Shown in pieces: positions 11,243 to 61,132 of a stretch of DNA of 64,000 nucleotides. Source of the stretch: Mobula hypostoma (taxonomy: Eukaryota); NCBI RefSeq assembly GCF_963921235.1, contig NC_086101.1:31124001-31188000 (forward strand). The letters run 5' to 3'. Position numbers and translations under genes: made by a program. The notes beneath the pieces are model-generated. The model was given only the letters and a program-made list of their open reading frames with translations, searched no databases and was not told where the DNA came from. Position 1 is the stretch's first letter. Every line of letters starts with the position of its first letter.

Positions 11243-12609
11243 TCAGCTGCTGTGAGTACGGGACCACTGCCACCACGCTAAGGTGCCAATGCCCAGAGCG
11301 ATCGCAGAGAGCTCTGCGTTGCCCACCAGCGCACACCACACTGCATTGTAGAACAGCAGGCCCATCAGACTCCACAGGCTGTGTGCGGAGCCCCTCCGGG
11401 ACAACTGCAGCCCCACCATGCCGGATACGATCCAGATTAGACCCCAGAGTGGAGAGGAGCACAGCAGGAGAAGGCACAGGCCAGCGTAGCCCTGGGTGCC
11501 ACAACACCACCAGCAGACCTTGGAGACACTGCCACAGCCCAGCAATGATAAGAATGTTCCAGCATATCCCAGCACACCACAGCAGACCCACCAGATCCAA
11601 GCATTATTGTCTAACAGCCACAGGAGCCCTAGGAAGCCCACAAAGCTCAGCTCCAGCCAGGAAGGGACTGTGTAACCTCGGGATGACAGACACCACCCAA
11701 AGAAACTCAGCCCAACCAGGCAGATTCCAGGGAGCCCAGCAGAAGCCAGCAGGAAGCAGGAGAGCCCAGCGTGTCCCAGCACACCACAGTACTGCCAAGA
11801 GATCCCAGCCAGGTTCCTGTCGTCCAGCAGAGACCACCAGAGACCGGAAAATCCCAGCACACCACAGCAGACCAAGTACACCTCCAGAAAGTCGGCTCTC
11901 CCTGGCCAGGCAGCGGCAAGGGAGATCAGCAGGCCGGAACAGAGCCAGTCCCAGCGCCTGCCCGGGACCCCGTCGCTGCGGTCCCCAGGTGGAGCCGCGA
12001 GGATGGCATCCTCTCGCTTGGGCTCTGGCGGCCCAGCCAGCCTCTCCAGGCCCAGGCCGGGATCGTCGGCAGAAGAAGGGAGCAGCCGGAGGGGCTCGGC
12101 ATTCCTGCCACCCAGTGCCGCTCCTGGGCTGCAGAACGGGAAGAGCCTCTGGGTGAACCGGTCATGGTAGGTGTGGAAGTGGGACATCCCATCGGCGTTA
12201 TAAAAGGACACCCGGCCTCCCTCGTAGTCCAGGTAAACCCCCACCACCCGGGGCTGCAGATCCAGCTGCAGCTCCTCCGAGGCACCGGTGAAGGCCTTGT
12301 ATGTCACCCCGTTCCTGAGTCCCAGAGTCCAGTATCCGTGGGTCGGAGACAGCACAATGCTTCCCTTCCTCCTGGTCAGCTCGCTCGCCACCCCGACAGT
12401 CCAGGAGATCTTGCGGCCCACCTTCACCTCCCAGTAGTGCCTCCCCATCGCAACGCCCCCGAAGGCAAGGACACAGGGACTGGGGTCAAGGCTCAGCAGG
12501 TGTTCAGGCCACAGCTGCTTCTCGGGCCGGGGCCCCGTGCTGCTCAGATCCTCGGATAAGGAGAGCCACGGGCTGACTGTGGCCAGGTTAAGGATCAGTG
12601 GGCCGGAGC
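11243..12609 (-). CDS. Terminal exon: PRY-SPRY (about 12609-12077), acidic/Pro linker and hydrophobic tail (11953-11243)
   Basis: ORF 11243..12622; acceptor ttgtgttccacag| at 12610; canonical B30.2 motifs. Confidence 0.88.
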
Positions 12610-22562: not shown

Positions 22563-22933
22563 NNNNNNNNNNNNNNNNNNNNNNNNNNNNNNNNNNNNNN
22601 NNNNNNNNNNNNNNNNNNNNNNNNNNNNNNNNNNNNNNNNNNNNNNNNNNNNNNNNNNNNNNNNNNNNNNNNNNNNNNNNNNNNNNNNNNNNNNNNNNNN
22701 NNNNNNNNNNNNNNNNNNNNNNNNNNNNNNNNNNNNNNNNNNNNNNNNNNNNNNNNNNNNNNNNNNNNNNNNNNNNNNNNNNNNNNNNNNNNNNNNNNNN
22801 NNNNNNNNNNNNNNNNNNNNNNNNNNNNNNNNNNNNNNNNNNNNNNNNNNNNNNNNNNNNNNNNNNNNNNNNNNNNNNNNNNNNNNNNNNNNNNNNNNNN
22901 NNNNNNNNNNNNNNNNNNNNNNNNNNNNNNNNN
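22563..22933. other. Assembly gap (371 N)
   Basis: Run of N. Confidence 1.
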
Positions 22934-23289: not shown

Positions 23290-23920
23290 TGCTGCCTGGG
23301 CTGGAGCCGGTCCCCGCAGCGCCCCGGGATGAACGCGGTGGGTCTGCCGATTCAGCCGACCGGTGAGTTCCCGTTCGCGTTCCTCAAACCCGGCTGTCAG
23401 TCCGCCAACCTCGCCCGAAGCAGCAGTGCAGTCACCGGTCGGACCTTTCGCAGTTCCTCAGTGCCGGGACCGTCATGCAGAAGGAACCGGCCACCTTCAG
23501 CTCCTCGTCCTTCCAGAGCTGCTGTGATTCAGCTACGGTCCGCAGGGTGAACGTGTCGATAAGAACCCCAGTCCCAGCTGATCAGATCCCCGGAATTGGA
23601 ATTTTAGTGTTTGGATTTATTTATATTACATGTTTTGGAGTTGGATTTGGTTTACTATTGTCACATGTGCCGGGATACGGTGATACAGTGGGGATGAGTT
23701 CTGGGTTTAACCTGAGGCCGCCTTTCCACGCGGCGTAGCACAGAAAGGCTTCCTGCTCCGACGCACCAGACTCCGCATCACCTATTTCCTCGCTGATGCC
23801 GGAGCTGAGGATATCTCGGAGCGGGCGCGGGCCTCGCTGCGGGAGCAGGGTGAACAGCCAACGGTCACGGTACACGACGCACCAGGGTGTCCGTCTCCAA
23901 AGGGATGAGACGCCACAAGC
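23290..23920. promoter_or_regulatory. CpG-rich region between the divergently oriented B30.2 genes (candidate promoter)
   Basis: Visible CpG enrichment relative to flanks; lies 5' of both gene models. Confidence 0.4.
23329..23362 (+). CDS. Candidate first coding exon of the butyrophilin-like gene (MNAVGLPIQPT-G)
   Basis: gggATG in a CpG-rich patch with a strong phase-1 donor CG|GTGAGT, compatible with the exon at 28753 (would give 454 aa); no independent support. Confidence 0.35.
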
Positions 23921-24752
23921 TATGCTTGTGCATGGGGAGAAGGGGGGCTTAAATGAAGGCTGAGGACCAGGGGCCAGCATCGCAAAACCGAAGTTCTCAC
24001 TGTACTTCGGTCCACATAACAATAATAAGCAATTTTGCCGATTTACCAATCACTCCTTGTGCCAAAATGCCAGCAAGAATAAAAACAGAACACAAGACAA
24101 GAAACTGGGAACAGGATCAAGCCACTCGGCCTCTCAAATCCACTCCAACCCCACCATTGCACATGATCACGCGCTCAACTCCTGTTCTCCGCCAGCTCCC
24201 CATAACCCTCGATTTCTCAATTTTTCAAATATTAATCCATCTCCAACTTAAAACTACCTCAAGATCTGAACTCCATCACCCTCAAGGGCAGAAAATTCCA
24301 GGGATTAGTTCCACCCTCGTTCTGTACACCTCGGTTTTAAATGACCGGACCCTTATCTTGTATCCATTTCCCCTCGTTTGTGACTCTACCAGTGGTGGAA
24401 ACACCCAGCATCTACCCGTTAGGATCTCATATGCTTGAATAAGGCCAGCGCTCCTTCTTCTAACCTCAAGGAGCTCCGACCCAGACTGTGTTGGTGTTTT
24501 ACAGGGCGGTTAATTCCCCACGGTGCCCAGAGCTGGTCGCCTCGAGTATGGGAAGCCTTGACAGTGACTGTAATCGCGGTCAGCGTAACGTCCTGGATAT
24601 ATTTTCGGAAAAGTAAGTATCAAAGAAGTGATAGAAGACTTAGGTGGGAAGGAAAATTATGAGAATTTCACCAGTGATTAGGAAGGCCAGGGGACGTAAA
24701 ATGTATCTTCGTTGGAAGATGCGCTTCCCCGCAGAGGGCCGCCAGTGGTTCG

Positions 24753-26427
24753 GATGTAATTGAAGGCTATAGCCACTGGGTGGCTCCCTCGGACCATTAT
24801 CTCCAGAGCTTCCTTCAGTCGCTCAGATCAGAAAAGAGTACTGTATCTTAATTTTTTTTGGATAAAACCCTGCTCGTTTGAATAGCATCCGCTAATGGGC
24901 CACTTTTCTGTGAATGATACACTTCTTATAGAGTCTCAGACAGATACAGCACAGGAAGAGGCCATACCGGCCGCAATGTCTGTGCTGTTCCTTTAGCATG
25001 TCTACACCAATCCCGTTTGAGGGGAAATTAGAAAGGTTAGGTCTGTATTCCGCGGAGCAGAGGAGATTAAGAACATACACAAAATGCTGGAGGAACTCAG
25101 CAGGCCAGTGTCAAAAAAGGGCACTGAGAGAAATTATAAGACTATGGGGTGTGGTTGGTTAGCTTTAATAGGGAGCCATTCGAGTTCTCAGGGGCAAGTT
25201 GCATCATCCTGTGCTGCATGATTCTACAATATATTGAACAAAGTAACTCATCTAATCACCAGCAGAATTAGACTGATTGTGTGCTACGTCTTCTTTATGT
25301 CCCATTGATGGTTTAAAAGACGCGTGTGTTTACAGACACTTAGGCTCTCTGTTCAGATGTTTACAGAGACTTCATCCCTGAGTCATAGCTGTGGTAACAG
25401 AGAGTGAGATGCTAATGTTGCAACTAAACACCCAAATCTGTTTTTAAAGTAATTACAGACTTTAACTTTAACAAAAAAACCTTACCCACCCCTCCCGGGA
25501 CCTCAGAAGCTGCCGACGCTGTGGCAGGCTTTCTCTGGAGTCAGCAGCCTCTGCCGGTGCTGATGTCTGACAGCTCAGACACCGGGCGTTAGCGAAGTGC
25601 AGGCGTGCCCACTAATCCCACCCGTCTACTCACCAAGGACAGCTCCGACTGAGGCCAAGGGTTAACAGTGGCTTGGTGGATTGACACACCTCAGGGGTAG
25701 AGACTGGGGGTCAAGTCCTGAGCTCATGAACCAAGCTGGAGGTTGGGGTAGAGTGGGGAAGGTATGCTATGCTCTAGGAGAAGCTGACAAACAGATAACA
25801 CATCCGCCTAACCAATAGAATGAGCACAGCGGACCTTAAAAGGACCCAACCTCACAATCAACCTCATTATGATCTTGCGACTTATCGTTTACCCGCACCA
25901 CACTTTCTGCTGATTTTTCGCTTTCTTCTGCAATGCTGTTTTCTCTTATTCTACCTCGATGCACTGTGTAACGAATTGATCTGTGTGAACAGTATGTAAG
26001 ACAAGTTTTTCACTGAATCTCAGACCATGCCACAATACTAAACCAGTTCCAATACCAAACCCTTCCCTCAGACACTCGGTCTCCACCCAGCAAGTTTCAG
26101 TCCCAGCCAACACCCAAACCCACCATACGATTGTTCTTCATTTACGTTTGCGGGTCCTTCCTCTGCGCACAAATTGGCTCCTTGTCCCTATAAGGATAGT
26201 TTGGAAGTGTTCCAATGGCTGTAAAATGCAGCCGATGTAATTGAAGGCTTTTGCCACTGGGTGGCTCCCTCGGACCAGTTTCTACAGCGCTTCCTTCACT
26301 CAGATCAGAAAAAAGTATCTGTGGTTTATCTGCTCGTTTCTATAGAATTAACGTCCGTTTAATGTGCCACTTTTCTGTGAATGACACACTTCTTATAGAG
26401 TCTCAGACAGACACAGCACAGGAAGAG
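24753..26427 (+). repeat. About 200-bp imperfect direct duplication (24753-24960 and 26234-26427)
   Basis: Shared GATGTAATTGAAGGCT...GCCACTGGGTGGCTCCCTCGGACCA...CCACTTTTCTGTGAATGA.ACACTTCTTATAGAGTCTCAGACAGA.ACAGCACAGGAAGAG. Confidence 0.9.
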
Positions 26428-27849
26428 ACCAGTAATCTGGCAAAGATCAGGAAAGAACATCCTTAGAAATAGTTCTAGGGTCTCGGTGATACTGGTGAGG
26501 CAGTATATTGTATTATCCATCCTAATTTCCCAGATGCCATTGGGAGCCAAAGACATGTCAAGGGCTGCCATCGTGTTCAGGTGAGATCCCAGGATGGGAC
26601 TGTGGGCTCCCTTTCCTAGGTCTTTGAACCAGGAATTTTATGGCAACATTGGTGCTCACTAGGCATCAGCAGTGGGGGTAGAATTGTGCTTTGCTGGATT
26701 GAATTTCCAGTTCAGATACCCTGTGGCTTTACCTCCCAGTGGAACAGCTAGTAGTGACATTCCCTAGATCTGGTTTGATCCCAGCCAAGGGTGTAAGAGA
26801 CCACAATGCAAGAAGAACTCAGCAAGTCAGGAAGCATCCCTGGAGGCAGAAGATATACAGTAGGTAAAGGTTTTAGATCAAGACCCTGTGTCAGGACTGA
26901 GAGGGGTTGGGGAAGATTGCCAGTATATAGAGTATAGAGGAGCATTTGACAGATCCAGGTGGGGAGGAGGGGGTCTTCTTCTCAAGCCCATCATCTCTAT
27001 TGGAGCATCGGCTCCTGGCAGCAGCTTACCAGAGTCCTCAGTCCTGAGCCCGTCTTTCAAGTTCTCCCTGTGTGCAGCCACCCTCATACTCCTTCTCCCA
27101 GGGTTGTGGTCTGTGGAGCTTCTGCTGGCCTCTCTGTAGCACTGGGTTTTTTACAGGGGTTGCCAGCCCAACGCCCAACCTTCCTCCCTTCATAACCGGG
27201 CTTGGGACCAGCCATGTGGAGTGTGGGTAGACGGAATCAGGTGGGGAGAGGGGATGGAGCAGAAGCTGCTGGGCAAGAGGTGGAACCAGATGAGAGGAGG
27301 AAAGCAGATGGAAGTTGGAACCAGGTAATGAAAGGATGGGAGGACTGAAGAAAGGGAGAAGAAAATCAGGTGGACAAATGAGTGTGGGGAGAGCATGGTG
27401 GCGAGTTGTGGGTTATGAGATAACTGGGAAATTCATTCTTCATACCAGTGGGCAGTAAGTCCCGCTATCACCCACCAATTTCTATTCCTCCCTCACATCT
27501 CCTCTGGCTGTCATGTCCCCTCTCAGTCCTGATGCCTGGTCTTGACTCAGACAATCAACTTTCAACATTTAGCCTCCACAGATGTTTCCTGACAAGTGGA
27601 GTTCTTCTAGCGTTGTTGCAGATTCCAACATTTCCCATTTCTCTTGTCTCCTGAGCTCCAGCGCTGTCTGTGTGTGGAGTTTACATGTTCTACCTGTGAC
27701 TGAGTGGGTTTCCCCAGGTGTTCCAGCTTCCTCCCTGCCTGCACTGCACTTTCTCCGCATTCAGATATTGTGTTCCTATGTACATGTTACTCCATGCACT
27801 GTAGTAATGTATTCATCTGTAGGGATGGCAAGCAAAACAAAGTTTTTCA

Positions 27850-28680
27850 TGCAACGCACACAAAATGCTGGTGGAACGCAGCAGGCCAGGCAGCATCTAT
27901 AGGAAGAAACACAGTCAACATTGCGGGTCAAGACCCTTCATCAGGACTAACAGAAAAAAGAGATAGTAAGAGATTTGAAAGTGAGAGGGGGAGGGGAGAG
28001 ACCCAAAATGATAGGAGAAGACAGGAGGGGGAGAGATGAAGCCAAGAGCTAGGAAGTTGATTGGCAAAAGGGATACAAGGCTGGAGACAGGGGAGGATCT
28101 TGGGACAGAAGGCCTTGGAAGAAAGAAAGGGGGAGGGGAGCACCAGAGGAAGATAGACAGCAGGCAAGGAGTTATTGTGAGAGGGAAAGAGAGAAGAAAG
28201 AGAGAGAGAGATAAATAAATGAATAAATACATACATACATAAATAAATAAATAAGAGTTGGGGTAAGAAGGGGAGGAGGGGCATTAACGGAAGTTTGAGA
28301 AATCAGTGTTCATGCCATCAGATTGGAGACTACCCAGACGGTATATAAGGTGTTGTTCCTCCAACCTGAGTGTGGCTTCATCTCGACAGTAGAGGAGGCC
28401 GTGGATTGACATATCGGAATGAGAATGGGACATAGAATTAAAATGTGTGGCCACTGGGAGATCCTGCTTTCTCTGGTGGACAGAGCATAGGTGTTCAGCG
28501 AAGCGGTCTTCCAATCTGCGATGGGTCTCACCAATATATAGAAGGCCACACCTGGAGCACCGGACGCAGTATATCACCCCAGCCGACTCACAGGTGAAGT
28601 GTCGCCTCACCTGGAAGGACTGTCTGGGGCCCTGAATGGTGGTGAGGGAGGAAGTGTAAGGGCATGTGTAGCACTTGTTT
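27850..28680 (-). mobile_element. Penelope-like element 3' part (GIY-YIG endonuclease and terminal repeat)
   Basis: CESAGVIYCVRCSRCGLLYIGETHRRLEDRFAEH; pyrimidine-rich 3' region and shared terminal repeat. Confidence 0.88.
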
Positions 28681-28752
28681 CCATTGTTTCTCATTGTAGC
28701 TCTGTGGATATGACAATAATAAACCCGTTTATCAATTTCTGTGCCTCAACAG

Positions 28753-31700
28753 GAAGTTCTGACAGGTCGGTCTCTGTGTGGAGGAGTAATCTGGTCGTGG
28801 AGATATTACTGCAGGTGGCGATACTTTCAGGAGCAATGCTCATCTCCTACTGGAACACGGCAAACCTAGGTAAAGTTTAGTGCAAGATAACAGAATAAAC
28901 ACCAAACTCCGGTGGGTTTGAGATCCCCCACTCTGGTTTGTAACTCACTTCATTCCTATCCTTCCTGCACACTCTAACCTCCTCCGGCCCATCAGCTCCC
29001 TGAACTCTCTGTGATCCTCCAATTCACTGAACATCACTGAAGTTGGGCAGCCCCCCCCCCCTTCAACAGCGTGGGACCTTGGCCCAGGAATGTTTTCCTT
29101 AACTTTCATCATTCGCGGTCTTCAACATAACAGCTGGGAAGTCATGATACAGCTCCAGGCCACACTTAGAGTGTTGTATGCTGTTCTGGTCTCTCCATTA
29201 CAGCATGGGTGTGCAGGCTTTAGGGAGGCTGCAGAAGAGGTTCACCAGGATGCTGCCTGGATTAGAGAGCATGAGCTGTGAGGAGAGGTTGGACAAATTA
29301 GGATTGTTTCTGCTGTGGAGTGGTGACCTGAAAATCATTTTAACCATAATGAGATATGGATAGGGTAGACAGCCAGAATCGTTGTCCCAGGATTTACAAG
29401 GATGTTGCCAGGACTTGAGAAACTCAGTTACAGAGAAAGGTTAGGACTTTATTCCCTGGAGCGTAGAAGAATGAGGGGAGATTTGATAGAGGTATATAAA
29501 ATTATGATGGGTATAAATAGAGTGAATGCAAGCAGGCTTTTTCCACTGAGGCAAGGGGAGAAAAAAACCAGAGGACATGGGTTAAGGGTGAGGGGGGAAA
29601 AGGTTAAAGAGAACATTGGGGGGGGGCTTCTTCACACAGAGAGTGGTGGGAGTATGGAATGAGCTGCCAGATGAGGTGGTAAATGTGGGTTCTTTTTTAA
29701 CATTTAAGAATAAATTGGACAGATACATGGATGGGAGGTGTATGGAGGGATATGGTCCAGGTGCAGGTCAGTGGGACTAGGCAGAAAATAGTTTGGCACA
29801 GCCGAGAAGGGCCAAAAGGCCTGTTTCTGTGCTGTAGTTTTTCTATGGTTTCTGTGGTTGAAGGGGCAAATTCTAAAGGGCAGAAGTTTAAGGCAAAAGG
29901 CGGAAAGTTTGAAAGAGATTAATGAGGCAATTTGTTTACACAAAGAGCAGTAGGTACAGGAACGCACTGCCAGGAGAGGAGGTGGAAGTGGAACGATAGC
30001 AATGTTTAAGAGACATTTAGACAGGATTAAGAACTAGCAGGAAATGGGTGGATATGGACCACTTGCAGGCAGGTGGGATTAATTGGGTTGGCATAATGGT
30101 CAGCACAGACATTTTGGGCTGAAGGGCCCTTTCTGGTAATGTTCTACGTCCTAACCCCAGGGTGGATGTGCTGGTTTAAAATTGTGGGATGGGAGGTGGG
30201 GATGGAGACAATGAGAGTTTGTGGTGCCCAGAAACTCGCCATGACAGGCAGTGATGTTGACTTAGCCTCCACTGTCTGCACAAATTCGTTCGGGTGTATC
30301 TGCGCACTCTCCAACTTCTGAGCTTGAGGTTATGACCAGTAAAATCATGGATCATTACAGTTAACATCACTTGCCCTCTGTGACTTTGAGTAATATATCT
30401 CAGACAGTGTAAGGCAATCCCAGAACATGCGATGTGGATCCAAACTCTTGAGTCACTGCCACTGCAGAATACCCAGCATGCTAATGTAGTAGCAGAAAGT
30501 TTATAGGACCTACTATGGTATGTGGGGAATTTGAGAAAGCGAGTCTGCTGGAGTGGACTGCAGGTAAAACTGAAACACAGGGCCTTAAGACCCCACTTCC
30601 CTTCTTACCATCCTCCTGGCTAATGCACAGTCTCTGAAAATTAAAACTGAAGATCTCCAAGAAAGATTGCAGTACCGGAGGGACATCAGAGACTGCTGCG
30701 TACGCTGCTCCACAGAGTCATGGCTCACCCCCAGCATCCAGCACAAGGGCTTCACCTTCCACCGCATGGATCAGATAGCGGCATCAGATAAAGGCAGAGG
30801 TGCGGAGCAAACTTGTTGGGCCAAGTGGCCTAATTCTGCCCTGGTAGTATTATGGACGAATGGCTGGAGCTACCATTCCCAGAACTAGTACTGTACCAGA
30901 GAAATATCTCACGGTTAAAGTGATCAGTGACCCTGAAACATACTGGAAAGGTTGGTGGTTCAGTGATTGGTCCTGCAGGGTAACTCAGGAGGGAGGAATG
31001 TTGAGCACTCCCCCATTGTCCTCACTGCATCTGCCCCTCTGTGGGACACTGCCATTGGTCATTGGTGGGTGGAGTTTCATACCTGGATACAACCAGTAGT
31101 TTTGCTGAGGGTGATGATGGGGTAGATGTAGAAGGCTGTATTCTTTCCCTGCTCTGTACTTTCACAGCAGCCATTACTCTTTACTCTGTGTTGTTATTGT
31201 CTTCCCTTGTTTTACCTCAATACCATGTGCAATGAGCTAATCTGTATGAAGCTACGCAAGACAAGCTTATCACTGTACTTCAGTGCAAGAGACAACAATA
31301 AACTAATTCTAATTCCAATACCAATAAACAGCGGCAGGGGTTTGGTCCAGAACTGTTCACTGCTCAAACGTCACAAAGAGAAACAGACTTTGTAATTTGT
31401 TTTTTATTGTTACATGCTATGAGGGATTCCACTGAGATTGGGCGAGACTAGAACTAGAGGTCATATGATAAGGGTGAAAGGTGAAATATCTAAGAGGAAC
31501 CTGAGGGGGATCTTCTTCGCTCAGAGGGTGGGTTCACATTCAATATTTAAGAGAATATTTTGTTAAGTACATGAATGGGTGGGCTCTGGTCTTGGGGCAG
31601 GACGATGGGATTAGTTTGGTATGGCCCAGATGGGCGAAAGGGCCTCTTCTTGTGATGTAGTGTTCTACGACTCCATACAGCAAGATAGAGTGGAAGGTTT

Positions 31701-34700
31701 TTGCTTGCCATCCAGACAGATCATCCCATAGAAAAGAGCATCAAGGTAGTAAAAAGGAAACAGAGTGCAGAATAGAGTGCTACAGTTATAAAGAGAGTAC
31801 AGTACAGACAGACAATAAGGTGCAAGGACAAGTCCACCTTACCATTCCAGAGGACTGATCGATGGTGTAGAAGCTGTCCCTAAGTCTGGTGAAAATGTAC
31901 TTTCAGGCTTTGTGTCTTCTGTCTAGTGGACGAGGGGAGAGGAGGCAACGTCTGGAATAGCTAGCTGCTGTGCTGAGATAGGGTCCATGCAGAGGAGGCC
32001 AGTTTGTGTGATAGACTGACTATTGACTCCTTGCTGGGTGGGTTTGTATTCTGCACTGGCAACATTGCTTGGCCTCCCGGGCCCTTGGGAATTTGAATTT
32101 AGTGGATGGCCCCCCTCTCACGCTCTCTTCTTTCATCCTAGAGTTGTTTCTGTTGAAGGGGCTGGACCATCCCATCGTGGCCCTGGTGGGTGAAAGCGCT
32201 GTATTGAACTGCTCGGTCACATTCCGCCTCCAGGACAGGGGGCTGGGGGTCGAGTGGAGGAACCTGAGGACTCGAGCTGTGGTCCTGGCCTGCGACGATC
32301 AGGGGGGGCCTTGCCAGTCCTTCCGGAACGGGACACACCTCCTTGGTGACCAGCTGGAGGATGGAAACGTGTCGATCAGACTAGAGGGGGTCCAGGCCTC
32401 CGACGCAGGGATGTACCAGTGCACCGTCTTCTCTGGGACCCACTCCAGCTACGTGTCAATGCATCTAAAGGTTGTGGGTATGACGGTGGTCAGTTACATT
32501 TCGGATGGGGTGAGATCCCACCACATCATAGGCTCAGGCTTGGCATCCTGGCGGAGTGGGCAGTACTCCACCTTATCCAGTAATCCCAACTGCAGATCGC
32601 ACTGCAGTGTGCATGGAGTATCCCTTGAATCACAGGAAATAGGAAGAGGTGGTTCAGCCTACTAGATGCACACTGACGCTGTCACGCTAATCCCAATAAT
32701 ACACGGACAATGAGGAAAGCTGTACCCACAGTGGAATTGGTTGTCTCTGCCACTCTCTGGAGCATCTTGCTTCCCTACATTTCCTGTCATTATAGAATGT
32801 TAGGGTCAAACAGCATGGACCCAGGTCCTTTGACCCATCTTGTCCAGCCCAACCATGGTACGCATCAAGCTAGTCCCATTTGCCCATAGTTAGCCTACAT
32901 CCTTCCAAATACCTCCTATCGATGTGCTTAGCCAAATGTACTTAAATGTGTCTGTACCTGCATCAAACACGAGTGATTTCATATACATTCCAGCCTCTGC
33001 TTGAAGAAGTTGCCCCTCAGATCCTCTCTGAATCTCTGTTCCCTCCTCTGGGGAAAAGACTGTGTGTATTCCTCATGATTATACGCATCTCCGTAAGGTC
33101 ATCTCTCAGACTGCTGCACTCCAAGGAAAGAAGTCCCAGCCTTCCCAGCCTCTCTCTAGAACACATGCCCTTGAGCTCAGACAGTGCACTTGTAAATCTT
33201 CTCTGCACTTTTTTCCAGTTTAGTGATGCCTTTCTTATAACAGGGTGGCCAAAACTGAACACAATACTCCATGTGTGGTCCCACCAACATCTTGCATACA
33301 TTATGTGTAGAGACATTAACCTAAATGGTGTCCATCTATCCAGGCTTCTCTAGGGCAAAGACCGAGAGGGTTTGCACCCTGTCAGATTGGGATTGGGGTA
33401 ATGAGGCTGTTCTCCATCTTGGGTGTCCATGGACACTAGCTGTGTTGAGGTGGCACCCTCTTGCTTGGTGGAGGTAAAGGTCCAGTTGAACTGGGAACCC
33501 AGATGGCGCTGGCCATGAATTGGATCGAGGGGGGATGTATGTTCCAGGGACCAGTGACAACAAGGAGTGGAGAGCTCCCCTCAGAATAAGGGTTGAATCC
33601 TTCAATACGAGCCTGAGCAGAAATCCTCATTCCAGTAAAACTCCAATAATCCTGCACACTTAAGACTTTGTGCTGGAGTGGGAAATACTCAGAATTGATG
33701 AATATCGTATCTCTTAAAACTCCTGGAAAGGTTTTAATTCATGTGTTAGATGTTGCAAAGGAGAGAAATGAATCTCTCATTGAAGTGGGTTAGTTCTAAA
33801 GGGAGAATCCGGGCATCCCAAAGAAATGCAGCACTGTTGAAGTGTGGTCACTAATGACCCAGGAGGGTAGTCCTTGTGTGCACAGTAAGATCCCACAAAT
33901 AGACAGATATTCCCTCAAAAAGTGAGTCAATTGTCAGCATACAGAGGCACCAGGGCTCCTTCAGTACAGTAGAACTCCAATAATTCACAGGAGTCAGAGC
34001 CCAGGAGGGAGAGTGCAGGAACTGGGGTGTAGTGGATTATCTGAATTTTACTGTCCTGAGGGAGTGCCAGTGTATCAGAGTTGGGTCAGTTGGGTGATAT
34101 ATTGACCTGCGATCTAAAATGGCCTGTTTGAGGGATTCATGTTGACGATACTTCAGCAGTTTTATTAATAATCCCTCAAACAAAAGTTATCAACTTCTCA
34201 TTTGTGGGATTTGTGCATGTTTTGACTGCCTCGCTCCGATGTGATTAGTGTCCACTCTCTGACAGTGCCTCATTGCTTTCGGATGTCCAGGGGGTGTAAT
34301 GTCTGTGCATCTTCCTCCAAACTGAGCCAATGGTCCCATTCCATTTCAGCCCTTGGCACGAAGCCCACCTTATCTGCAGAGCAGTTCAACGAGACCTCCT
34401 TCCTGTACACATGCCGGACAGAAGGCTGGTTCCCCGAACCCGCCCTCATCTGGAAGAACAGTGAGGGGAAGAACCTGTTGCCACTGTCAAAGGTAACCAA
34501 GACAACAGGAGAGGAAGGCCTGTACAAGTTGGAGATCCAGCACTGGACAGCCCAGGTTGTCCCACCGTCTGTCACTTGCATCATCCACAACAGGGTGAAT
34601 AACATCAAGAAGGTGTCAACTGCATGTACCAGAGGTGAGTTACTTGAACTTGCAAATGTATTTTACAAACTGTGCTTAAATGTAAATGACCAGCTTATTG

Positions 34701-37451
34701 AGAACAAGAATTGGAAAACATTACCCACTCCAGCATCTAGTTTAATTATTGAGCCACGGCAGGTACAGCATAGGACAGACAGAGAGAGAAGTTCCCTCCA
34801 CTCTGTCACATCACACATTCCCAGAGTCAGACATGGCATGAAGCTCCCAACATGGTCTGATCTGCTGCTGGAGTTAGAGACAAAAGGAATTCCCTCCACC
34901 CTGTCGCAGCACACCCTTCTGGGTTCAGACACAGAGGGAAACTGACTCCAAACCGTCCCATCACACACTCCCATGATCAGAGTGAAGCTTCTTCTCCACC
35001 GTCCCATCGCACACTCCCATGATCAGAGTGAAGCTCCATCTCCACCGTCCCATCACACACTCCCATGATCAGAGTGAAGCTCCGTCTCCACCGTCCCATC
35101 ACACACTCCCATGATCAGAGTGAAGCTCTGTCTCCACCGTCCCATCACACACTCCCATGATCAGAGTGAAGCTCCATCTCCACCGTCCCATCACACACTC
35201 CCATGATCAGAGTGAAGCTTCTTCTCCACCGTCCCATCACACACTCCCATGATCAGAGTGAAGCTTCTTCTCCACCGTCCCATCACATACTCCCATGATC
35301 AGAGTGAAGCTTCTTCTCCACCGTCCCATCACACACTCCCATGATCAGAGTGAAGCTCCATCTCCACCGTCCCATCACACACCCCCATGATCAGAGTGAA
35401 GCTCCATCTCCACTGTCCCATCACACACTTCCACGATCAGAGTGAAGCTTCTTCTCCACCATCCCATCACACACTCCCATGATCAGAGTGAAGCTTCTTC
35501 TCCACCGTCCCATCACACACTTCAACGATCAGAGTGAAGCTTCTTCTCCACTGTCCCATCGCACACTCCCACGATCAGAGTGAAGTTCCATCTCCACCGT
35601 CCCATCACACACTCCCATGATCAGAGTGAAGCTTCTTCTCCACCGTCCCATCACACACTCCCATGATCAGAGTGAAGCTTCTTCTCAACTGTCCCATCAC
35701 ACACTCCCATGATCAGAGTGAAGCTCCATCTCCACCGTCCCATCACACACTCCCATGATCAGAGTGAAGCTTCTTCTCCACTGTCCCATCACACACTCCC
35801 ATGATCAGAGTGAAGCTCCATCTCCACCGTCCCATCACACACTCCCATGATCAGAGTGAAGCTTCTTCTCCACCGTCCCATCACACACTCCCATGATCAG
35901 AGTGAAGCTTCTTCTCCACTGTCCCATCACACACTCCCATGATCAGAGTGAAGCTCGTTCTCCACTGTCCCATTGCACACTCCAAAGGTCAGACACAGGG
36001 TGAAGCTTCCTCTGACCCAACAGGGACTTCTGGGGCAGAGGTTTGTAACAGCAGCTATAATTCCCATCCCAATGTTTAATATGAGATGACAAATACTAAT
36101 TCAGCTATGGCAGGACTGAGTCACTGACTGGTACAGTAGGGAATGAGAGCAAAATGTGATGTGCACAAAGTTGAAAATCTGTGACTGTTTTATTGATATT
36201 TGCAGAACTGCTTCCACACACTCAGTTCTACATTGGCGAAACTGGTAAGACGTCTCACATTAAGATAAGCAAGTACTTAAAGTTTTGGTTCTTTGATCAG
36301 CCAGAATTGACCCTGGTTTCCTCTTGTTTCATAGAATGGAAACACATCCAAAGTTTCTCAGGTGAGTGAAGTGGATGGGGCAGTGGTAATTTAATCCATC
36401 TCACGTTGGGACCTCAAGGAACAGAGGCAAGAATGCTGGTTAACAGTTGCGGGGGGAGAGAGAGAGAGATCCCTGTTCAATTCCATGGCTCCGCTTGACA
36501 TCTGGAGCTGAGACATGCGTCATGTGACAGAAACACCCCTTACTGGGACAGTCAGGCTAAGTGATGTTTTCTGGCCCAATGTCTTCTCACTTTGGCCCAT
36601 GAGAATACCTGCATCGAAAGAGGGCACATATATAGTAGCCAATGGCAGCACTAGATGCAAGGCATCTTTGCATCAGCCCTGGGAACTCTCTAGATGATGC
36701 TCAGCCCCACAGAGTGAGGGAGCAGTGGCTGGCCTGAATAAGGGATGGGTCTACTGGTTGAGGGCAAGGTCAGTGCTGATGGGCCGAGGGTGAGCTTGCT
36801 CTTAATTGGTTTTCGGGGAAAAGGAGTGACCAATGACTATTCCATGCCATAGAGAGTTACCCGTCACTGGTCGCCGTGTTATAATGATGTTACTTTGACA
36901 TTTCCTTCTCCTTTTCCCTTTCAGTTTCCCAGAGTCTGGACACGGACACAGCCAATCTACACTTTGGCCGCTCAAATCACCTCACCAGCATGGCGGTGGG
37001 CTCCCTGCCAGCACTGGCCTCTGGACCGCTTTACAGCCTGCAGCTCAGCCCCTGTGCCCTCTCCTCCCGTGCTATTTCCTCAGATCGGGCCTACTGGGAG
37101 GTGGAGGTGGGTAGGAGCCAGGAATGGCACCTGGGCCTGCTGGGACAGAGGGACAATGACAAAGCCTGGGGAGAGGGATCAACCTGGGTACGGACCCTGT
37201 CCCGGCTCAACAAGACGGTGTATGGGGTGACAGGCTCCCCAGGGCGGACCCTGGTGCTGGACAATGAGCCTACAGTGGTGGGCCTGTACCTGAACCACCT
37301 GCGAGAGTACCTCTCCTTCTTTGACGCTCGCAGGCAGCTGCACCTCTGCACGTTGACAGTTGACTCCACCAAAAGGCTCCACCCCATCTTCTGCACTCCT
37401 TCCCCCACGGCACAGGCCCATAGCAACACTGGTAGTGACAGAGGGGTCTGA
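28753..37451 (+). CDS. Butyrophilin/B7-like protein: hydrophobic leader exon, IgV, IgC, two mini-exons, B30.2; no TM exon found
   Basis: All-phase-1 exons: 28753-28869 (leader), 32142-32477 (IgV: VALVGESAVLNC...W...GNVSIRLEGVQASDAGMYQC), 34350-34634 (IgC: YTCRTEGWFPEPALIW...VTC), 36206-36244 (39 nt), 36335-36361 (27 nt, EWKHIQSFS), 36925-37451 (B30.2: LDTDTAN, YWEVEVG, VGLYLN, LSFFD). Confidence 0.82.
29090..30150 (+). mobile_element. Nested CR1 3' fragments (younger copy about 29390-29850 inside an older one)
   Basis: Two successive RFTRMLPGL-type segments, each with a CR1 tail. Confidence 0.7.
32142..32477 (+). CDS. IgV exon of butyrophilin-like gene
   Basis: B-strand Cys, C-strand Trp and DxGxYxC motif; phase 1-1 splice sites. 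Confidence 0.9.
34350..34634 (+). CDS. IgC exon of butyrophilin-like gene
   Basis: BTN/B7-type CxxxGWFPxPxxxW motif; ttcag| acceptor and |gtgagt donor. Confidence 0.9.
34945..36010. repeat. 46-bp minisatellite, about 22-23 copies, in the intron after the IgC exon
   Basis: Unit CTCCACCGTCCCATCACACACTCCCATGATCAGAGTGAAGCT(TCTT/CCAT); GATCAG recurs from 34975 to 35941, exactly 21 x 46 bp; degenerate flanking copies from about 34790. Confidence 0.97.
36925..37451 (+). CDS. B30.2 terminal exon of butyrophilin-like gene (divergent)
   Basis: Long polypyrimidine acceptor; LDTDTAN, RAYWEVEVG, VVGLYLN and LHPIFC motifs. Confidence 0.88.
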
Positions 37452-38854
37452 CTGCAGCTCAGTACTGCTGCCCCCTCAAAGTAGGGTTGGTGGAGGGAGG
37501 GAGGGGGGAAAGAGGGTCCTCACTCTCACTCCAGTGACCAATCCAGTATGAGACATGGCAACAGGAGGCAGACACTCTCCGGGGTGACTGTATCACTGCC
37601 TCCCTTCACATCACACCAGTGGAGAGGGTGGGAGGGACCCTGTTTTCTCCTGTGAGAACCTGGACCCAGTCTGACAAGGACAAGGACATCCAGGAGTTGA
37701 TAAGCAACTCTCCTCCCTGAACCAGAAACTGCTGCTGGATTGAGAGCCCCACCAACCCCAGGGAAGGGAAGCAGCTCACAGGGCATCTGAGGACTGGGAA
37801 GCTGATCACTGAATGGCCAGTGGATGGAGAGAGTGTAGGAAAACCCAGTGAGTGGTTTATAACCACAGTGCGCACAGGCTCTCCATCACCAGCCCAAGCA
37901 CAAAGTCCCTCCAAGTGGAAAACCAAGAAAGAACCAGAGTTGTCAGTGTCAGCTGGGAACACCTTGAAAACCCTCCCCAGCCATCACTGCTTGGACAACC
38001 TCAGGGTAACCTGCCCAGCCAGTCCTGACCTGTTGGTCAGAAGAGGTGACAAGTCACAGGTCACATCAACTAAACCAAGAAGCCTTTGGCACACTGAATA
38101 CAACTGAACTCCAACAATCCAGTATCCAATTGTTCAGAAACCTTGTTGGTTGAGCAGCTGGCTTAGTCATTCAGAGAGTGAGCTGGGGTCCAGACTGCAA
38201 ATTGGGTTGTCCAGGAAGATGGCCAGAGTCGGGACTGAGATTGACGTGGGTGGCCTTACAGCTGGAGACAGGGTTTGGATTATTTGTATATTTTCCGCTT
38301 CCTTCGAACATACCAGGTTCACTGGAAGTTTGCTGCCCCAATGTGTAACAGGCAGAAAATTGTGTTGGAGTTTTTCCAAATCATCTACTAATCCAGGAAA
38401 ATATGCCGAATTATCAGATCAGAGCCAGGTTTAATATCACTGGCATATGTCATGGAATTTTATTAACTTTATGGCAGCAGTACAATGACATACATGATGA
38501 ATAAATATAGAGCACAACAAAAACTGAGTTACATTAACTATATATGTCTATTAAATAGTTGAGTTAAGATAAGTAGTGCAAAAAAAGTCATGAGGTAGTT
38601 TTCATGGGTTCAATGTTCATTCACAAATTGGATGGCAGAGGGGAAGAAGTTGTTCCTGAATCACCGCGTATGCGCCTTCAGGCTTCTGTATCTCCTTCCT
38701 GACGGTAACATTTCCCTCCATCTGCCCATGTGTGTGCCTGTCCATTTGTTGATGCAGATTTCCAGCATCATTCAGGACGTGACTGAGAACGCTGCACCTC
38801 TCTCTAGAGCACACTGACTCACTGCGTAAGGAATACACTCTTCCCCCGCCCATC

Positions 38855-41807: not shown

Positions 41808-44800
41808 ATTCCTAAAGAATTCTTTGCAAATCTTTTGATGGAATTATTCCCTGATATTATAAAGTCTCTGCCTTTGATTGATCATGCTCAAAGATCGACT
41901 TCAAAATCAAAACCAAGATCAGTCATTATATGTTTCCATGAATTTCAAATAAAGGACCGTCTGATTCATGATGCCCATGGAAAAGGTATGATTGACTACC
42001 AAGATCAGAAGATTTGTATTGTTGAAGGTTTTTCATCAGAAGTTATGGCAGAATGTGTTAAGTTTAAAAAAGTTATGGCAGAGCTATACAGCCAAAATTT
42101 TAAGCCTTCTCTTCATGTTCCAGCTCAACTGAGAATCACAATGGAAGATGGATCATTTAAATGGTTTTGTACAAAGGCGGAAGAATTTTTAGACTCAAGA
42201 AAATGACTGTATACATATATTGAATAGATTAAAAATCTTGCAAAAACAGAAATACTATATATTAAAAAAATGACTGTTTAATATTTTTCAGTATGAATAA
42301 TTGCTCTTTCTGTTTGATAAACCTGTCTACACTTGTTTTTTTTTAATTTACTGTATATTATTTAGTCTTGGTTGAAACAGCAAATAACCTTGAATTCTTT
42401 GGAGCGGTTCCAACAGGCTTTCTAAGGGGATGTTTTCAGTGGGGGTAGATAGCGGTTGTTCTTTGACCGATTTTCTTTGGGAGGAGGGAGAGGGATGGGG
42501 AGTTCTTTTTTCTTGAAGCTGATTTGGGAACCTAGTCAATTCTGTTGCTTAGCCAATATATCTCAAGGTTTATTTTTTGGGTTTAACATACATTTCTCTG
42601 ATTGCTACTTTAACCTTTCTTATAAATAGTTTTAAAATGGATCAGTTTTAATCCAATTAGTTTTAACATGAAAGGGCTAAATCACCCCGTGAAAAGAAAT
42701 AAAGTTTTTGCCTATATTAAAAAAAATTAGGGTACCAATTGTTTTTCTTTAAGAAACCCATGTATGTAAGCGTGACAATTCATGCCTTTTTAATTGATGG
42801 AGAAGGTCTCATTTCCATTCCTCATTTCAAGCCAAAGAGGTTTCAATCCTTATAGATAATAAAGTTCCCTTTATTCAACATAAAGTAATTTCTGATATTA
42901 ATGGGCATTTTGTTATAGTATCAGGGAAACTGAATAACAAATTAATGGTATTTGCCAATGTGGATGCTCCAAATAAAGATGACCCAGGTTTCTTTGAGCA
43001 TTTTTTTCATTTTTAGCACATCTAAGTCTGTTCTCATTGGTGATGGGTGGAGACTTTAATTGTTGCATAGATCCAGCTTTAGATCATTCATCTTCTAAAC
43101 TAATGATACCAAATAAATCAGCTGTGTTTATTAAATCTTTTTTTTCATGAAATGTGGTATTGTTGAAGCTTGATGTTTTTTTTTCCATTTAGTGGACAAG
43201 GAATATTTGTTTTTCTCTCATGTCCATCATACATATTCCAGGATTGATTTTTTTTTAAATTTTTGCTAGCCGAATGATTCCATCAGTTTGATCCTGTGAA
43301 TATAAAGAGATTGCTATCTCAGATCACACTCCTGTGCTCCTACCTTTAAATCTCCCTGGTCTTTTTCAAACAAATAGGTTTTGGTGATTTAATTTAACTT
43401 TGTTATCTGAAAAAGATTTTTTGAAGTCAATTTTATATTCAGCGAGATAAAGCAGGTAAATTATTGGCTGATCAAATTAAAACGTTTATAGCTAAACAGG
43501 AGATTAAAGAAATATGCAAAGCTAATAGTGATAGGACAACAGATTATTTAGAAATAAATGATACTTTTAGAGACCTTATTCTAAACTCTATAGTTCTGAA
43601 TCTTTAAGGTTAACACTGTAATGAACAACTTTTTAGACCAACTAAACATCCCTACAATTTCTGCCGACAACAGAAAGTTGTTAGAACAACCTATTTCCTT
43701 TGAGGAAATTGTTGAGTCTGTGAGCTCATTACATTTGAGGAAAGCTCCGAGTCCAGATGGATTTTCTGGAGAGTTTTACAAGATCTTTTCCTCACTGCTT
43801 ATACCTCATTTATGTTCAGTTTTTTAGATTCATTCAAGTCAGGCAGACTCCCTCAATCTTTTTATGAGGCTTCCATTTTGCTTATCCTTAAAAAGAATAA
43901 GGATCCAACTGAATGCTCTTCTTATAAACCAATTTCTTTACTTAACGTTGCTACTAAGATCCTATCTAAAGTTTTGGCCCATAGGATTGAAAATATTTTA
44001 CCATCTGTCATTTCCGATAACCAAACTGGATTTATCAAAAATCAATATTCTCACTTCAATATTCGTTTGTTATTAGAAGGCTTTCGATAGAGTTGAATGG
44101 AATTATTTATTTAAAACTTTAGAAAAATTCAATTTTGGACCCGTTTTCATTCAATGGATTAAATTACTTTATTTAGCTCCTTCCACCAGGGTTATCACTA
44201 ATTCTCATAATTCTAAACCATTTAACCTTCAACATGGCTCTAGACAAGGCTGTCTGTTGAGCCCTTTGCTTTTTGATCTGGCCTTAGAACCTTTAGCCAT
44301 TGCCTTTGGAGAATCTAATGATATCACCGGTATTTTAAGGAGAGACACTATTCACAAAGTCTCACTGTACACTGACGATCTGCTGCTGTTTATTTCTAAT
44401 GCTGAGACTTGGTTACCCCATGCACTTTCTTTACTCTGTTTTAGCCAGTTCTCAGGTTATAAATTAAACTTATATAAAAGTGAACTTTTCCCTTTGAATA
44501 ATTTGATACGAACAAATTCTAAGCTTCCTTTTAAAATTGTAAGAAACCAATTTACCTACTTAGGTGTAACAATTACTAAAAACTACAAGTGTCTATTTAA
44601 AGAAAATTTTCGTACCATATTGAATCACGTAAAAAGGAGACTATCAAATTAGTTGCCTCTTTTGTTATCACTGATTGGCCAAATTAACTATTAAAATGAA
44701 TATATTACCTAAACTTATATCTTTCTCAGGCATTGCCTGTTTTTATTCCCAAATCTCTCTTTGATTCTCTTGACTCTATTATGTCATCTTTATATGGAAG

Positions 44801-46300
44801 AATTAGCATTCTAGATTAAATAAAATTCATCTTCAGAAAGATAAAAAGAATGGAGGATTAGCCCTACCAAACTTTAGATTTTATTATTGGGCAGTTAATA
44901 TAAAAATCTTACATTTTGGTTATATTACATTAATCTTGAGGATTGCTCAATGTGGGTTTTTTTTAAGAAGCTAACTCTGTTAATAAATTTTCTATTATTT
45001 CTCCTCTTGGATCCTCACTTCCTTTGTCTCTGAGCAAGTTAACTGATAATCTGGTAGTTAAACACACTATGAGAATTTGGATACAATTCCCAAAACACTT
45101 TGGCTTATTGAGATTTTCTCTTTCAAGTCCCATTCTTTCTAAATTTTTTTTTTAAACCCTCTTTGATTGATGTGGCTTTTAAAGAATGGGATAGATTAGG
45201 TATTAAATACTTTCAGGACTTGTTAGTAGAGGGAAGTCTCTTTTTGTTTGAACAACTGTCAACTAAATATAGTTTACCTAAAACTCATTTTTTTCAATAC
45301 CTACAAATAAGTGATTTTTTACAGTCTCAAATAAGTACATTTCCTAAAAGTCCTGATAAGAATCTACTAGATGTAATTTTTTAATTTGAAAACTTTTTAT
45401 AATGGATCTATATCTAATATTTATAATATGCTGTTGAGAATGAGAAGTGTTCCTTTAGATAAAATTAAAAATCTTTGGGAACAAGGTTTACAGACTTCGA
45501 TTTCTGAGGAAACTTGAAATCAATTTTTTTTAAACTAGTTAACACTTCATTGTTATGTGCCCACCACTCTCCCCTACAGTTTAAAGTGGTCCACAGGGCC
45601 CATATGACCAAGGATAAGTTATCTTGTCTTTACTTAGATGCATCTCCGTATTGTGATAAATGCAATAATGGAAAAGCTTCACTTATTCATATGTTTTGGA
45701 CATGCAAGTCTTGGAAAATATTGGAAAGTATTGGAAAGTAGTATTTCAAAATTTCTTGATACTTTTCAAAGTAAACTTTAAGCCTTGACCGCTTTATTTG
45801 GTATTGTTGGAGGGAAGGATATTATTTTGGAGTTATCTGACTTGCACATTTTGGCTTTTATGTCTCTTATGGCCAGAAGGACACTCTTGCTTAAATGGAA
45901 AGATGCAGCTCCTCCTATTCACGCTCAATGGTTACGTGATGTGATGTCATGTTTAAATTTAGAGAAGATTCGAGGTTCAATCTCTGAATCTAGCCAAGAC
46001 TTTCAAACATTGTGGGGGCCTTTTTTGAATTATTTTCAAAACCTTTGATTTGCTGATAAAGCACAAATGACTACAATAACTTTTTTCCCTTTGCTAATCA
46101 GCTTCAGTCTTGGTAGTGAGTTGGATTTTTTAATATAATAAAATTGCTATATTTCAATGTTATGAATTAATCAATCTGTATGAATATAGGGCAAAGAGTC
46201 TTTATATGCAATTTAGTATAATGTATTGATATATTTTTTTCCTCCTGCTCTGTATTCTTGTATGTAAAATTAATAATAAAAATATTGGAAAGATAAAAAT
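41808..46300 (+). mobile_element. Decayed L1-clade LINE (ORF1 C-terminus, APE-RT ORF2, A-rich end)
   Basis: PRSVIICFHEFQIKD (L1 ORF1-like); KAPSPDGFSGEFYK, YKPISLLN, NQTGFI, SPLLF, LYTDDLL; C-terminal CxxC...HMFWTC; many stops. Confidence 0.88.
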
Positions 46301-60885: not shown

Positions 60886-61132
60886 CCCGGGTCTGGTAGG
60901 CGAGAAAGAAGAACGCAGGTGGGAGTTCTGAAACCGGAACATCGGAGAACCCACCGTCGAGTATTTTATCTCATCGGCCAATACCGAGCTAATTGATTCA
61001 ATGATTACTTTATGACTTTAACCTTCTCCCTCCTTAACTCAGAGGTGTGGCTGCCTGATTTAGTAGTCCGTTGTGGTTTGCACCGTAACATTCTCTATTT
61101 AAGCTTCCTCCTTCATTCCTTCGATCTGTGAT

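Follow-up and report, generated by a model that had tools for sequence, protein, structure and literature searches.

A 64,000-nt stretch of the genome of the devil ray Mobula hypostoma (assembly GCF_963921235.1, contig NC_086101.1, positions 31,124,001 to 31,188,000; hereafter the window) contains a butyrophilin-family gene in which no transmembrane segment is encoded between the second immunoglobulin (Ig) domain and the B30.2 domain. Butyrophilins are type I proteins, with an extracellular IgV-IgC pair, a transmembrane segment, and a cytosolic B30.2 domain. The devil-ray gene instead encodes its hydrophobic segments ahead of the Ig domains, and the protein probably has a permuted topology, with the membrane-embedded pieces at the N-terminus and B30.2 on the exoplasmic side. 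A first-pass annotation of the window had proposed a protein without a transmembrane exon, either secreted or N-terminally anchored, with the Ig and B30.2 domains on the same side of the membrane. That proposal is now supported by a spliced transcript, an exactly matching gene model, and 10 orthologues.

Gene structure and expression

The gene has eight coding exons on the + strand (Table 1), with a coding sequence from 23329 to 37451 that specifies a 490-residue protein. All seven introns are of the GT-AG type and of phase 1. The translation is exactly that of NCBI protein P0001 (“butyrophilin subfamily 1 member A1-like”), which surfaced when the B30.2 exon was the query of an exhaustive HMMER search, as a 100% identical protein of 490 residues with B30.2 at residues 317–490. 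P0001 is 76 residues longer than a model in which translation begins with the leader exon's first ATG; the difference is made up by two 5′ exons (23329–23362 and 24505–24612). The first-pass annotation was therefore wrong to start the gene at 28753; its exon coordinates, phases, and peptides are otherwise correct, apart from one-base adjustments. The second 5′ exon resembles a type I transmembrane exon with a stop-transfer cluster and has a symmetric phase. All six words sampled from it are present in a probable RNA sequencing run from the same species (X1, 99+% identical to the window). A 371-N assembly gap (22563–22933) lies ~400 bp upstream of the exon that begins with ATG 23329, and given this gap the promoter and the 5′ untranslated region (UTR) may be incompletely assembled.

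By homology, the gene is a member of the butyrophilin family. Pfam recognizes the three large exons as V-set (2e-9), C2-set_3 (3e-16), and SPRY (8e-8). The family profile matches full-length BTN3A3, BTN3A1, and BTN2A1 (6e-73 to 1e-62) as well as BTNL8 and BTNL3 (to 7e-58), in two stretches that correspond to the Ig and B30.2 regions. The gene is intact and expressed. A pseudogene was considered and rejected on the grounds of an open frame, a spliced transcript, and an IgC domain that has 99% identity between Mobula and the stingray Hypanus.

Absence of a transmembrane exon between IgC and B30.2

The hallmark of a type I butyrophilin, a single transmembrane helix between IgC and B30.2, is missing. 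The first-pass annotation had seen no hydrophobic exon in 34635–36924, and two analyses bear this out. In a Kyte-Doolittle scan of the three + frames of this interval, no 19-residue stretch reaches 1.2 save one polypyrimidine tract that is read into the 39-nt exon, and a TGA upstream closes that frame. Likewise, enumeration of the interval yields 85 open AG...GT candidates with phase 1 at both ends, none of them hydrophobic (the best 17-residue hydropathy is 0.86).

Transcript data decide the matter. Public transcript contigs were placed on 35990–38400, which is clear of the minisatellite in the intron after IgC. A run from a close relative that is ~96% identical to the window (X2) gives one spliced contig of 2,020 nt, with junctions 36244|36335 and 36361|36925 and an extension of ~950 nt into the 3′ UTR. 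The contig has a 235-nt overhang upstream of 36204, and this overhang ends in a 30-mer that is unique in the window and matches 34603–34632, the 3′ end of IgC. Hence, IgC (ending at 34634) is spliced directly to 36206. All of the junctions that the first-pass annotation had put forward for checking (34634-36206-36335-36925) are thus present in the relative's transcript, in which the Ig and B30.2 exons are joined with no transmembrane exon between them. Within 35990–38400, contigs from X1 cover the B30.2 exon and the 3′ UTR only, and not the introns.

A conserved elasmobranch lineage

The search for shark and ray orthologues proposed in the first-pass annotation was fruitful. When P0001, the family profile, and the Ig region of one shark protein of the family were used as queries, 10 further elasmobranch proteins with this architecture were recovered, and nine full-length models keep B30.2. 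The members come from Hypanus sabinus (88% identical), Pristis pectinata (68% identical; an N-truncated isoform), Cetorhinus maximus, Pristiophorus japonicus, Scyliorhinus torazame, Scyliorhinus canicula (P0008, 874 residues), Mustelus asterias, Heterodontus francisci, Heptranchias perlo (a model that stops right after the connector, before B30.2), and Hemiscyllium ocellatum. As judged from these proteins, the permuted-topology lineage spans sharks and rays. Word-indexed protein searches gave matches only in elasmobranchs, from which nothing firm follows for chimaeras or bony vertebrates. In the S. canicula model, IgC is preceded by a tandem array of four nearly identical IgV domains, and the model carries the NCBI label “LOW QUALITY PROTEIN: hemicentin-1-like”; the IgV repeats could be a true exon amplification or an assembly artefact.

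The lineage has a recognizable signature, defined from two alignments plus P0008, P0158, and P0159: an N-tail with the motif MxAVGF, a first hydrophobic segment (H1), a basic loop, a second hydrophobic segment (H2) with the pattern E..Q, IgV-IgC, a connector with the consensus DFLPHxQFxVSEAEW, and B30.2. The Mobula protein has every element. In all eight members measured, the connector, which begins where IgC ends (STA) and runs to the PRY motif (LDxDTA), has a length of exactly 38 residues, and it is polar, with a maximum 15-residue hydropathy of at most 0.5. A hydropathy scan of all members, together with inspection of their sequences, found no transmembrane-like segment after IgC. The two micro-exons within the connector are also conserved. 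The 39-nt exon has the family consensus DFLPHxQFxVSEA, in which P297, Q300, and F301 are invariant, and E307 and W308 are invariant in the 27-nt exon, which corresponds to the (E/R)W(R/K)..Q motif found ahead of PRY in butyrophilin and TRIM proteins. H1 is 85%–90% identical among sharks and 65%–75% identical between rays and sharks. The corresponding values for IgV are 60%–68% and 46%–57% (87% between Mobula and Hypanus). Since H1 is conserved above IgV, selection acts on the N-terminal segment, and its presence in the models is no accident of annotation.

Predicted topology

The order of elements in the protein is an N-tail of ~25 residues, H1, a basic loop, H2, IgV, IgC, the micro-exon connector, and B30.2. 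Kyte-Doolittle hydropathy across members is 1.16–2.01 for H1 and 1.81–2.38 for H2 (LVVEILLQVAILSGAMLISYW). H1 is flanked by a charge of about +1 on its N-terminal side and +4 on its C-terminal side; the loop (14–18 residues) has a net charge of +3 to +5, and the N-terminal flank of H2 has a charge of +4. By the positive-inside rule, the basic loop should therefore be cytosolic and the N-tail exoplasmic, with H2 carrying the downstream chain across the membrane. The Ig domains have invariant cysteine pairs (C110/C180 and C220/C275), a conserved extra pair (C137/C144), and an invariant N162-x-S164 sequon, all of which fit an Ig part that is lumenal or extracellular. Because only a polar connector of 38 residues lies between IgC and B30.2, B30.2 would have to be on the same side as the Ig domains. 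Taken with the cysteines and the conserved sequon, the positive-inside rule indicates that IgV, IgC, and B30.2 should all be exoplasmic.

How might such a protein be made? Most probably, H1 would insert with its N-terminus out and its C-terminus in, leaving the basic loop in the cytosol. H2 would then re-cross the membrane from inside to outside and translocate everything downstream. IgV-IgC-B30.2 would enter the lumen of the endoplasmic reticulum and later reach the cell surface, held by an N-terminal helical hairpin, with the short basic loop as the sole cytosolic part. If functional, B30.2 would be an extracellular binding module beside the Ig domains. The “N-anchored” form that the first-pass annotation had offered as one of two options gains strength from the 5′ exons that it had not seen, which encode a hydrophobic helix and a basic loop ahead of the leader.

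Structure prediction for the full-length protein (AlphaFold2, eight-sequence alignment) gives a mean predicted local distance difference test (pLDDT) of 52 and a predicted template-modelling score of 0.34, with low-confidence helices at residues 24–51 and 57–84. A look-alike search of the ESM Atlas with the N-terminal 86 residues returned no usable match. In a Pfam scan of the N-terminal 90 residues, residues 21–85 of the family protein P0153 match DUF2568, a bacterial small membrane protein family, by a narrow margin over the cut-off (26.6 bits, E 7e-6); this match is probably compositional, reflecting two hydrophobic helices, rather than homology. A glycosylphosphatidylinositol or C-terminal anchor was ruled out because the C-termini are polar.

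The state of B30.2 in rays

The B30.2 domain of rays differs from that of sharks: in myliobatiform rays it evolves rapidly, and its PRY half has become degenerate. Pfam detects both PRY (1e-19) and SPRY (5e-19) in a shark orthologue. PRY is 25%–29% identical between rays and sharks and 73% identical between Mobula and Hypanus, and the SPRY core is 89% identical between the two rays. An AlphaFold2 model of the Mobula B30.2 domain (49-sequence alignment) has a pLDDT of 78 overall, with 83–97 for the SPRY core, 47–66 for PRY, and 56–64 for the tail. The top Foldseek matches to this model are BTN3A3 (E 2e-11) and the B30.2 domains of TRIM21 and pyrin, with a template-modelling score of ~0.75. In the B30.2 exon, the differences listed between the window and the relative's transcript include 17 nonsynonymous and 5 synonymous changes (387 and 135 sites), giving a ratio of nonsynonymous to synonymous differences per site (pN/pS) of ~1.2. 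Coding divergence between the two is 4.2%, compared with 5.0% for the 3′ UTR, and there is no indel in the frame. These counts are small, and the pattern is to be read as either diversifying selection or relaxed constraint.

The NKT sequon that the first-pass annotation had pointed out in B30.2 does exist, at residue 411 of the Mobula protein. It is not conserved, however: Hypanus has NET, other members have no sequon at this site, and T413M removes it in the relative's transcript. At position 36989, X1 has A where the window has C, a nonsynonymous change (S337R) in the PRY part that may be an allele.

Weighing the alternatives

Several points weigh against an N-anchored protein with a working, exoplasmic B30.2 domain. 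The topology is derived from sequence rules. H1 is marginally hydrophobic in rays (1.33–1.43) and in Hemiscyllium (1.16), and it may not span the membrane. The conserved S/A-G-A of H2 is compatible with signal-peptidase cleavage, and the ectodomain may therefore be released and not anchored. The junctions joining exons 1, 2, and 3 are based on the NCBI model, cross-species conservation, and words in X1, and not on junction reads. The transcript that spans the downstream junctions comes from a related species and not from M. hypostoma itself, and the classification of the sequencing runs as RNA is a presumption (“RNA?”). Lastly, PRY goes undetected in a Pfam scan of the Mobula B30.2 domain, in which SPRY scores 8e-8, and both Mobula and Hypanus have polar residues in place of the EPLRL motif of the C-terminal strand. 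Together with the pN/pS of ~1.2, these features suggest that B30.2 may be losing its function in rays.

Could the protein be a canonical type I butyrophilin after all, with a transmembrane exon that escaped notice because the minisatellite intron conceals it or was collapsed together with it, or because other isoforms use it? The intron that would house the transmembrane exon in a canonical gene does contain a 1-kb minisatellite here, which is the kind of sequence that assemblies can collapse, and just one junction-spanning contig was observed. The minisatellite is real, as the first-pass annotation had said. The mRNA is nonetheless spliced straight from 34634 to 36206, and the assembled intron is free of candidate exons. 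Moreover, none of the nine other full-length models, one of them from an independent annotation pipeline, has a transmembrane segment at this place, and the eight members measured share an identical 38-residue connector. This reading is close to refuted, and we give it almost no weight. It is also very improbable that the arrangement is inverted, with a cytosolic N-terminus, H1 running from inside to outside, H2 returning, and both the Ig domains and B30.2 in the cytosol. Two hydrophobic segments do permit an even number of crossings, and almost every known B30.2 protein has this domain in the cytosol or the nucleus. The charge of the loop, set against ~+1 on the N-terminal side of H1, nevertheless places the loop in the cytosol by the positive-inside rule, and the invariant Ig cysteines, the extra cysteine pair, and the IgV sequon point to an oxidizing, glycosylating lumen. 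A variant of the permuted topology deserves more attention: H2 may serve as a signal peptide that is cleaved directly behind S/A-G-A or a few positions further on, leaving a small H1-loop-H2 fragment behind and releasing a soluble IgV-IgC-B30.2 protein on the same side of the membrane, with no anchor. H2 has a conserved, signal-peptide-like small-x-small motif, with small residues at −3/−1 in all members (SGA, AGA, AGT, LGC), it is as far from the first IgV strand as an ordinary butyrophilin leader would be, and, in the manner of signal exons, the leader exon has a phase-1 end. There is also an ATG at 28710, a short way ahead of the leader-exon acceptor, that shares the frame of this exon (MTIINPFINFCASTG..., in 28710–28752). 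If an internal promoter used this ATG, the product would lack H1 and have a classical signal with a long n-region; such use has not been seen, and the ATG is not known to be conserved. On the other hand, the small-x-small motif sits midway in a hydrophobic run of ~21 residues, which suits a transmembrane packing motif better than an exposed cleavage site, and the conservation of H1 and of E64 and Q68 in H2 is hard to square with an N-terminal piece that is merely discarded. Release is therefore the less probable outcome, and we consider it rather unlikely. A type II anchor through H2 alone is also possible, H1 being weak in rays. From sequence, then, the protein is predicted to be either N-anchored or released by signal peptidase, and the side of the membrane on which B30.2 lies is unaffected by whether it is anchored, released, or type II.

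A separate question is whether B30.2 still matters in devil rays and stingrays, or is a decaying appendage whose exon drifts near-neutrally while the Ig domains do the work. The pN/pS among the differences listed, the similarity of coding and 3′ UTR divergence, the low identity of PRY to that of sharks and its failure to register in Pfam where the shark PRY scores 1e-19, the loss of the C-terminal strand motif, the uncertainty of AlphaFold2 about PRY and the tail, and the Heptranchias model without any B30.2 domain are all consistent with decay. Yet Mobula, Hypanus, Pristis, and the related species all keep an open frame of 174 codons without a coding indel, and the SPRY core, which folds confidently, is as well conserved between Mobula and Hypanus as IgV is. 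The binding loops of B30.2 domains also typically change fast at nonsynonymous sites when they are under diversifying selection, as is established for TRIM5alpha, and the counts behind the pN/pS value are small and come from the differences listed. On balance, decay seems an unlikely account of the ray domain. The explanation that we favor, and regard as probable, remains a butyrophilin-family protein of permuted topology with its membrane pieces at the N-terminus, none between IgC and B30.2, and an exoplasmic B30.2 domain.

Relation to butyrophilins, venom proteins, and TRIM proteins

The ray gene shares much with the human butyrophilins BTN3A1/A3, BTN2A1, BTNL3/BTNL8, and BTN1A1, including IgV, an IgC of the C2-set_3 type, and a C-terminal B30.2 domain. 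Like canonical butyrophilins, it has one-domain phase-1 exons, micro-exons, and an EW..I motif right before PRY, and, as at canonical butyrophilin loci, it has TRIM genes as neighbors. It differs in having neither a transmembrane segment nor a juxtamembrane heptad/coiled-coil region between IgC and B30.2, but a 38-residue polar connector instead, and in having two N-terminal hydrophobic segments rather than one cleaved leader. The nearest match outside the family in a search with the Ig region, P0160 (metaclust, 344 residues, canonical butyrophilin-like, 30% identity over the Ig region), illustrates the contrast: it has a transmembrane segment (VAFLVAFSLVLGAAGVLVF, Kyte-Doolittle 2.64), the cluster RKRLKK, and a long charged heptad region before PRY, and the ray gene has none of these. 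The difference has functional implications. Much of the current interest in butyrophilins comes from their cytosolic B30.2 domain, which senses metabolites and relays the signal across the membrane to Ig domains that are read by gamma-delta T cells; sensing of cytosolic ligands from the inside out is described for BTN3A1 and BTN2A1. The ray B30.2 domain is predicted to be exoplasmic, and inside-out sensing of cytosolic ligands of this kind would therefore be impossible.

B30.2 domains that act outside cells have a precedent in venom proteins of the vespryn/ohanin and stonustoxin types, in which B30.2/PRY-SPRY acts extracellularly. The likeness of the ray protein to these is one of possible mode of action only, and not of membership; sequence kinship was not compared. 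The venom proteins, which are from unrelated lineages, lack both Ig domains and a membrane anchor. A vespryn consists of a cleaved signal and a stand-alone B30.2 domain, whereas in the ray protein IgV-IgC and two hydrophobic segments precede B30.2. TRIM proteins resemble the ray protein in this one domain: TRIM21 and pyrin match its fold, as noted above, and the B30.2 domain of shark family members is 45%–47% identical to the TRIM B30.2 exons of the window at 48.4 kb and 12.1 kb. Unlike the ray gene product, TRIMs are RING/B-box proteins of the cytosol and have neither Ig domains nor hydrophobic segments.

Genomic context

The features of the gene and of its neighborhood are listed in Table 1. 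Downstream of the butyrophilin-like gene, the SPRY and RING/B-box exons appear to be opposite ends of a single TRIM gene of ~12 kb, and an AT-rich block separates this gene from the butyrophilin-like gene. The GIY-YIG open reading frame (ORF) next to the leader exon is probably a fragment of a Penelope-like retroelement. Three further fragments are of the long interspersed nuclear element (LINE) type; one of them, at 55409–55963, is so assigned because the translation of its ORF resembles reverse-transcriptase ORFs.

Table 1. Positions in the window of the exons of the butyrophilin-like gene and of other features
Feature	Coordinates	Strand	Remarks
Coding exon 1	23329–23362	+	ATG 23329; MNAVGLPIQPT; phase-1 end; donor gtgagt
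Coding exon 2	24505–24612	+	108 nt, phase 1 to 1; N-tail, hydrophobic helix H1 (VWEALTVTVIAVSVTSWIYF), RK(R)
Coding exon 3 (leader)	28753–28869	+	117 nt; basic loop SSDRSVSVWRSN, then hydrophobic H2 (LVVEILLQVAILSGA|MLISYW)
Coding exon 4 (IgV)	32142–32477	+	C110/C180 pair; extra C137/C144 pair; N162-x-S164 sequon
Coding exon 5 (IgC)	34350–34634	+	Pfam C2-set_3, butyrophilin type
Intronic minisatellite	34952–35983		46 bp x 22.4 copies; non-coding, spliced out; intron after IgC
39-nt micro-exon	36206–36244	+	Encodes ELLPHTQFYIGET
27-nt micro-exon	36335–36361	+	Encodes EWKHIQSFS
B30.2 exon	36925–37451	+	Stop codon 37449–37451; SPRY core intact; strong divergence of PRY and of the C-terminal strand in Mobula
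3′ UTR	37452–38400	+	At least 950 nt, by transcript-contig coverage; AATAAA at ~38500
LINE-type fragment	2765–6505	+	Pfam endonuclease 9e-17 (3853–4626)
B30.2 ORF	11243–12622	−	459-residue single ORF; B30.2 joined to a long hydrophobic repeat-built tail; 34% identical to ray-gene B30.2
LINE-type fragment	14918–16816	+	Pfam reverse transcriptase 4e-12 (15884–16813)
GIY-YIG ORF	28287–28694	−	136 residues; GIY-YIG nuclease domain (Pfam 1.1e-5); adjoins the leader exon, antisense to it
AT-rich block	42001–46000		GC 0.32 vs ~0.47 elsewhere
SPRY exon	48345–48812	−	Pfam 6e-28; 47% identical to shark family B30.2
LINE-type fragment	55409–55963	−	
RING and B-box exon	60367–60981	−	Pfam 3e-11 and 9e-5

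Origin and significance

How did such a gene arise? A speculative scenario is that an exon resembling a type I transmembrane exon (phase 1-1, with an RKR stop-transfer cluster) came to lie ahead of the leader exon. A broader proposal, which we offer tentatively and hold to be somewhat doubtful, is that an inside-out butyrophilin was formed before the split of sharks and rays, when a type-I-like transmembrane exon came to lie at the front and the internal transmembrane segment was lost. The surface B30.2 domain would then be a ligand- or pathogen-binding module beside a T-cell-facing Ig head, under diversifying selection in rays, and the conserved hairpin with E64 and Q68 might recruit a membrane partner that stands in for a cytosolic signalling domain.

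We found no description in the literature of a butyrophilin without an internal transmembrane segment or with an extracellular B30.2 domain, in a search that was thin on subscription journals. A 2026 phylogenomic survey of butyrophilins that includes Hypanus sabinus makes no mention of such a topology (PMC12841164).

The public gene models of the lineage carry automatic names (BTN1A1-like, BTN3A3-like, BTNL2, ERMAP-like, and hemicentin-1-like). About ten public models are affected, since a reader would take “BTN1A1-like,” “ERMAP-like,” “hemicentin-like,” and similar names to mean a type I protein. The family is a known one, that of the butyrophilins, and the topology is new, with the domains predicted to lie on one side of the membrane and the hydrophobic segments at the N-terminus. 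Because a whole lineage appears to keep its three domains on one side, the order of Ig domains, transmembrane segment, and B30.2 would not be obligatory in this family. The lineage would provide a natural case for what a B30.2 domain can bind outside cells, and a tractable system for studies of secretion and topology.

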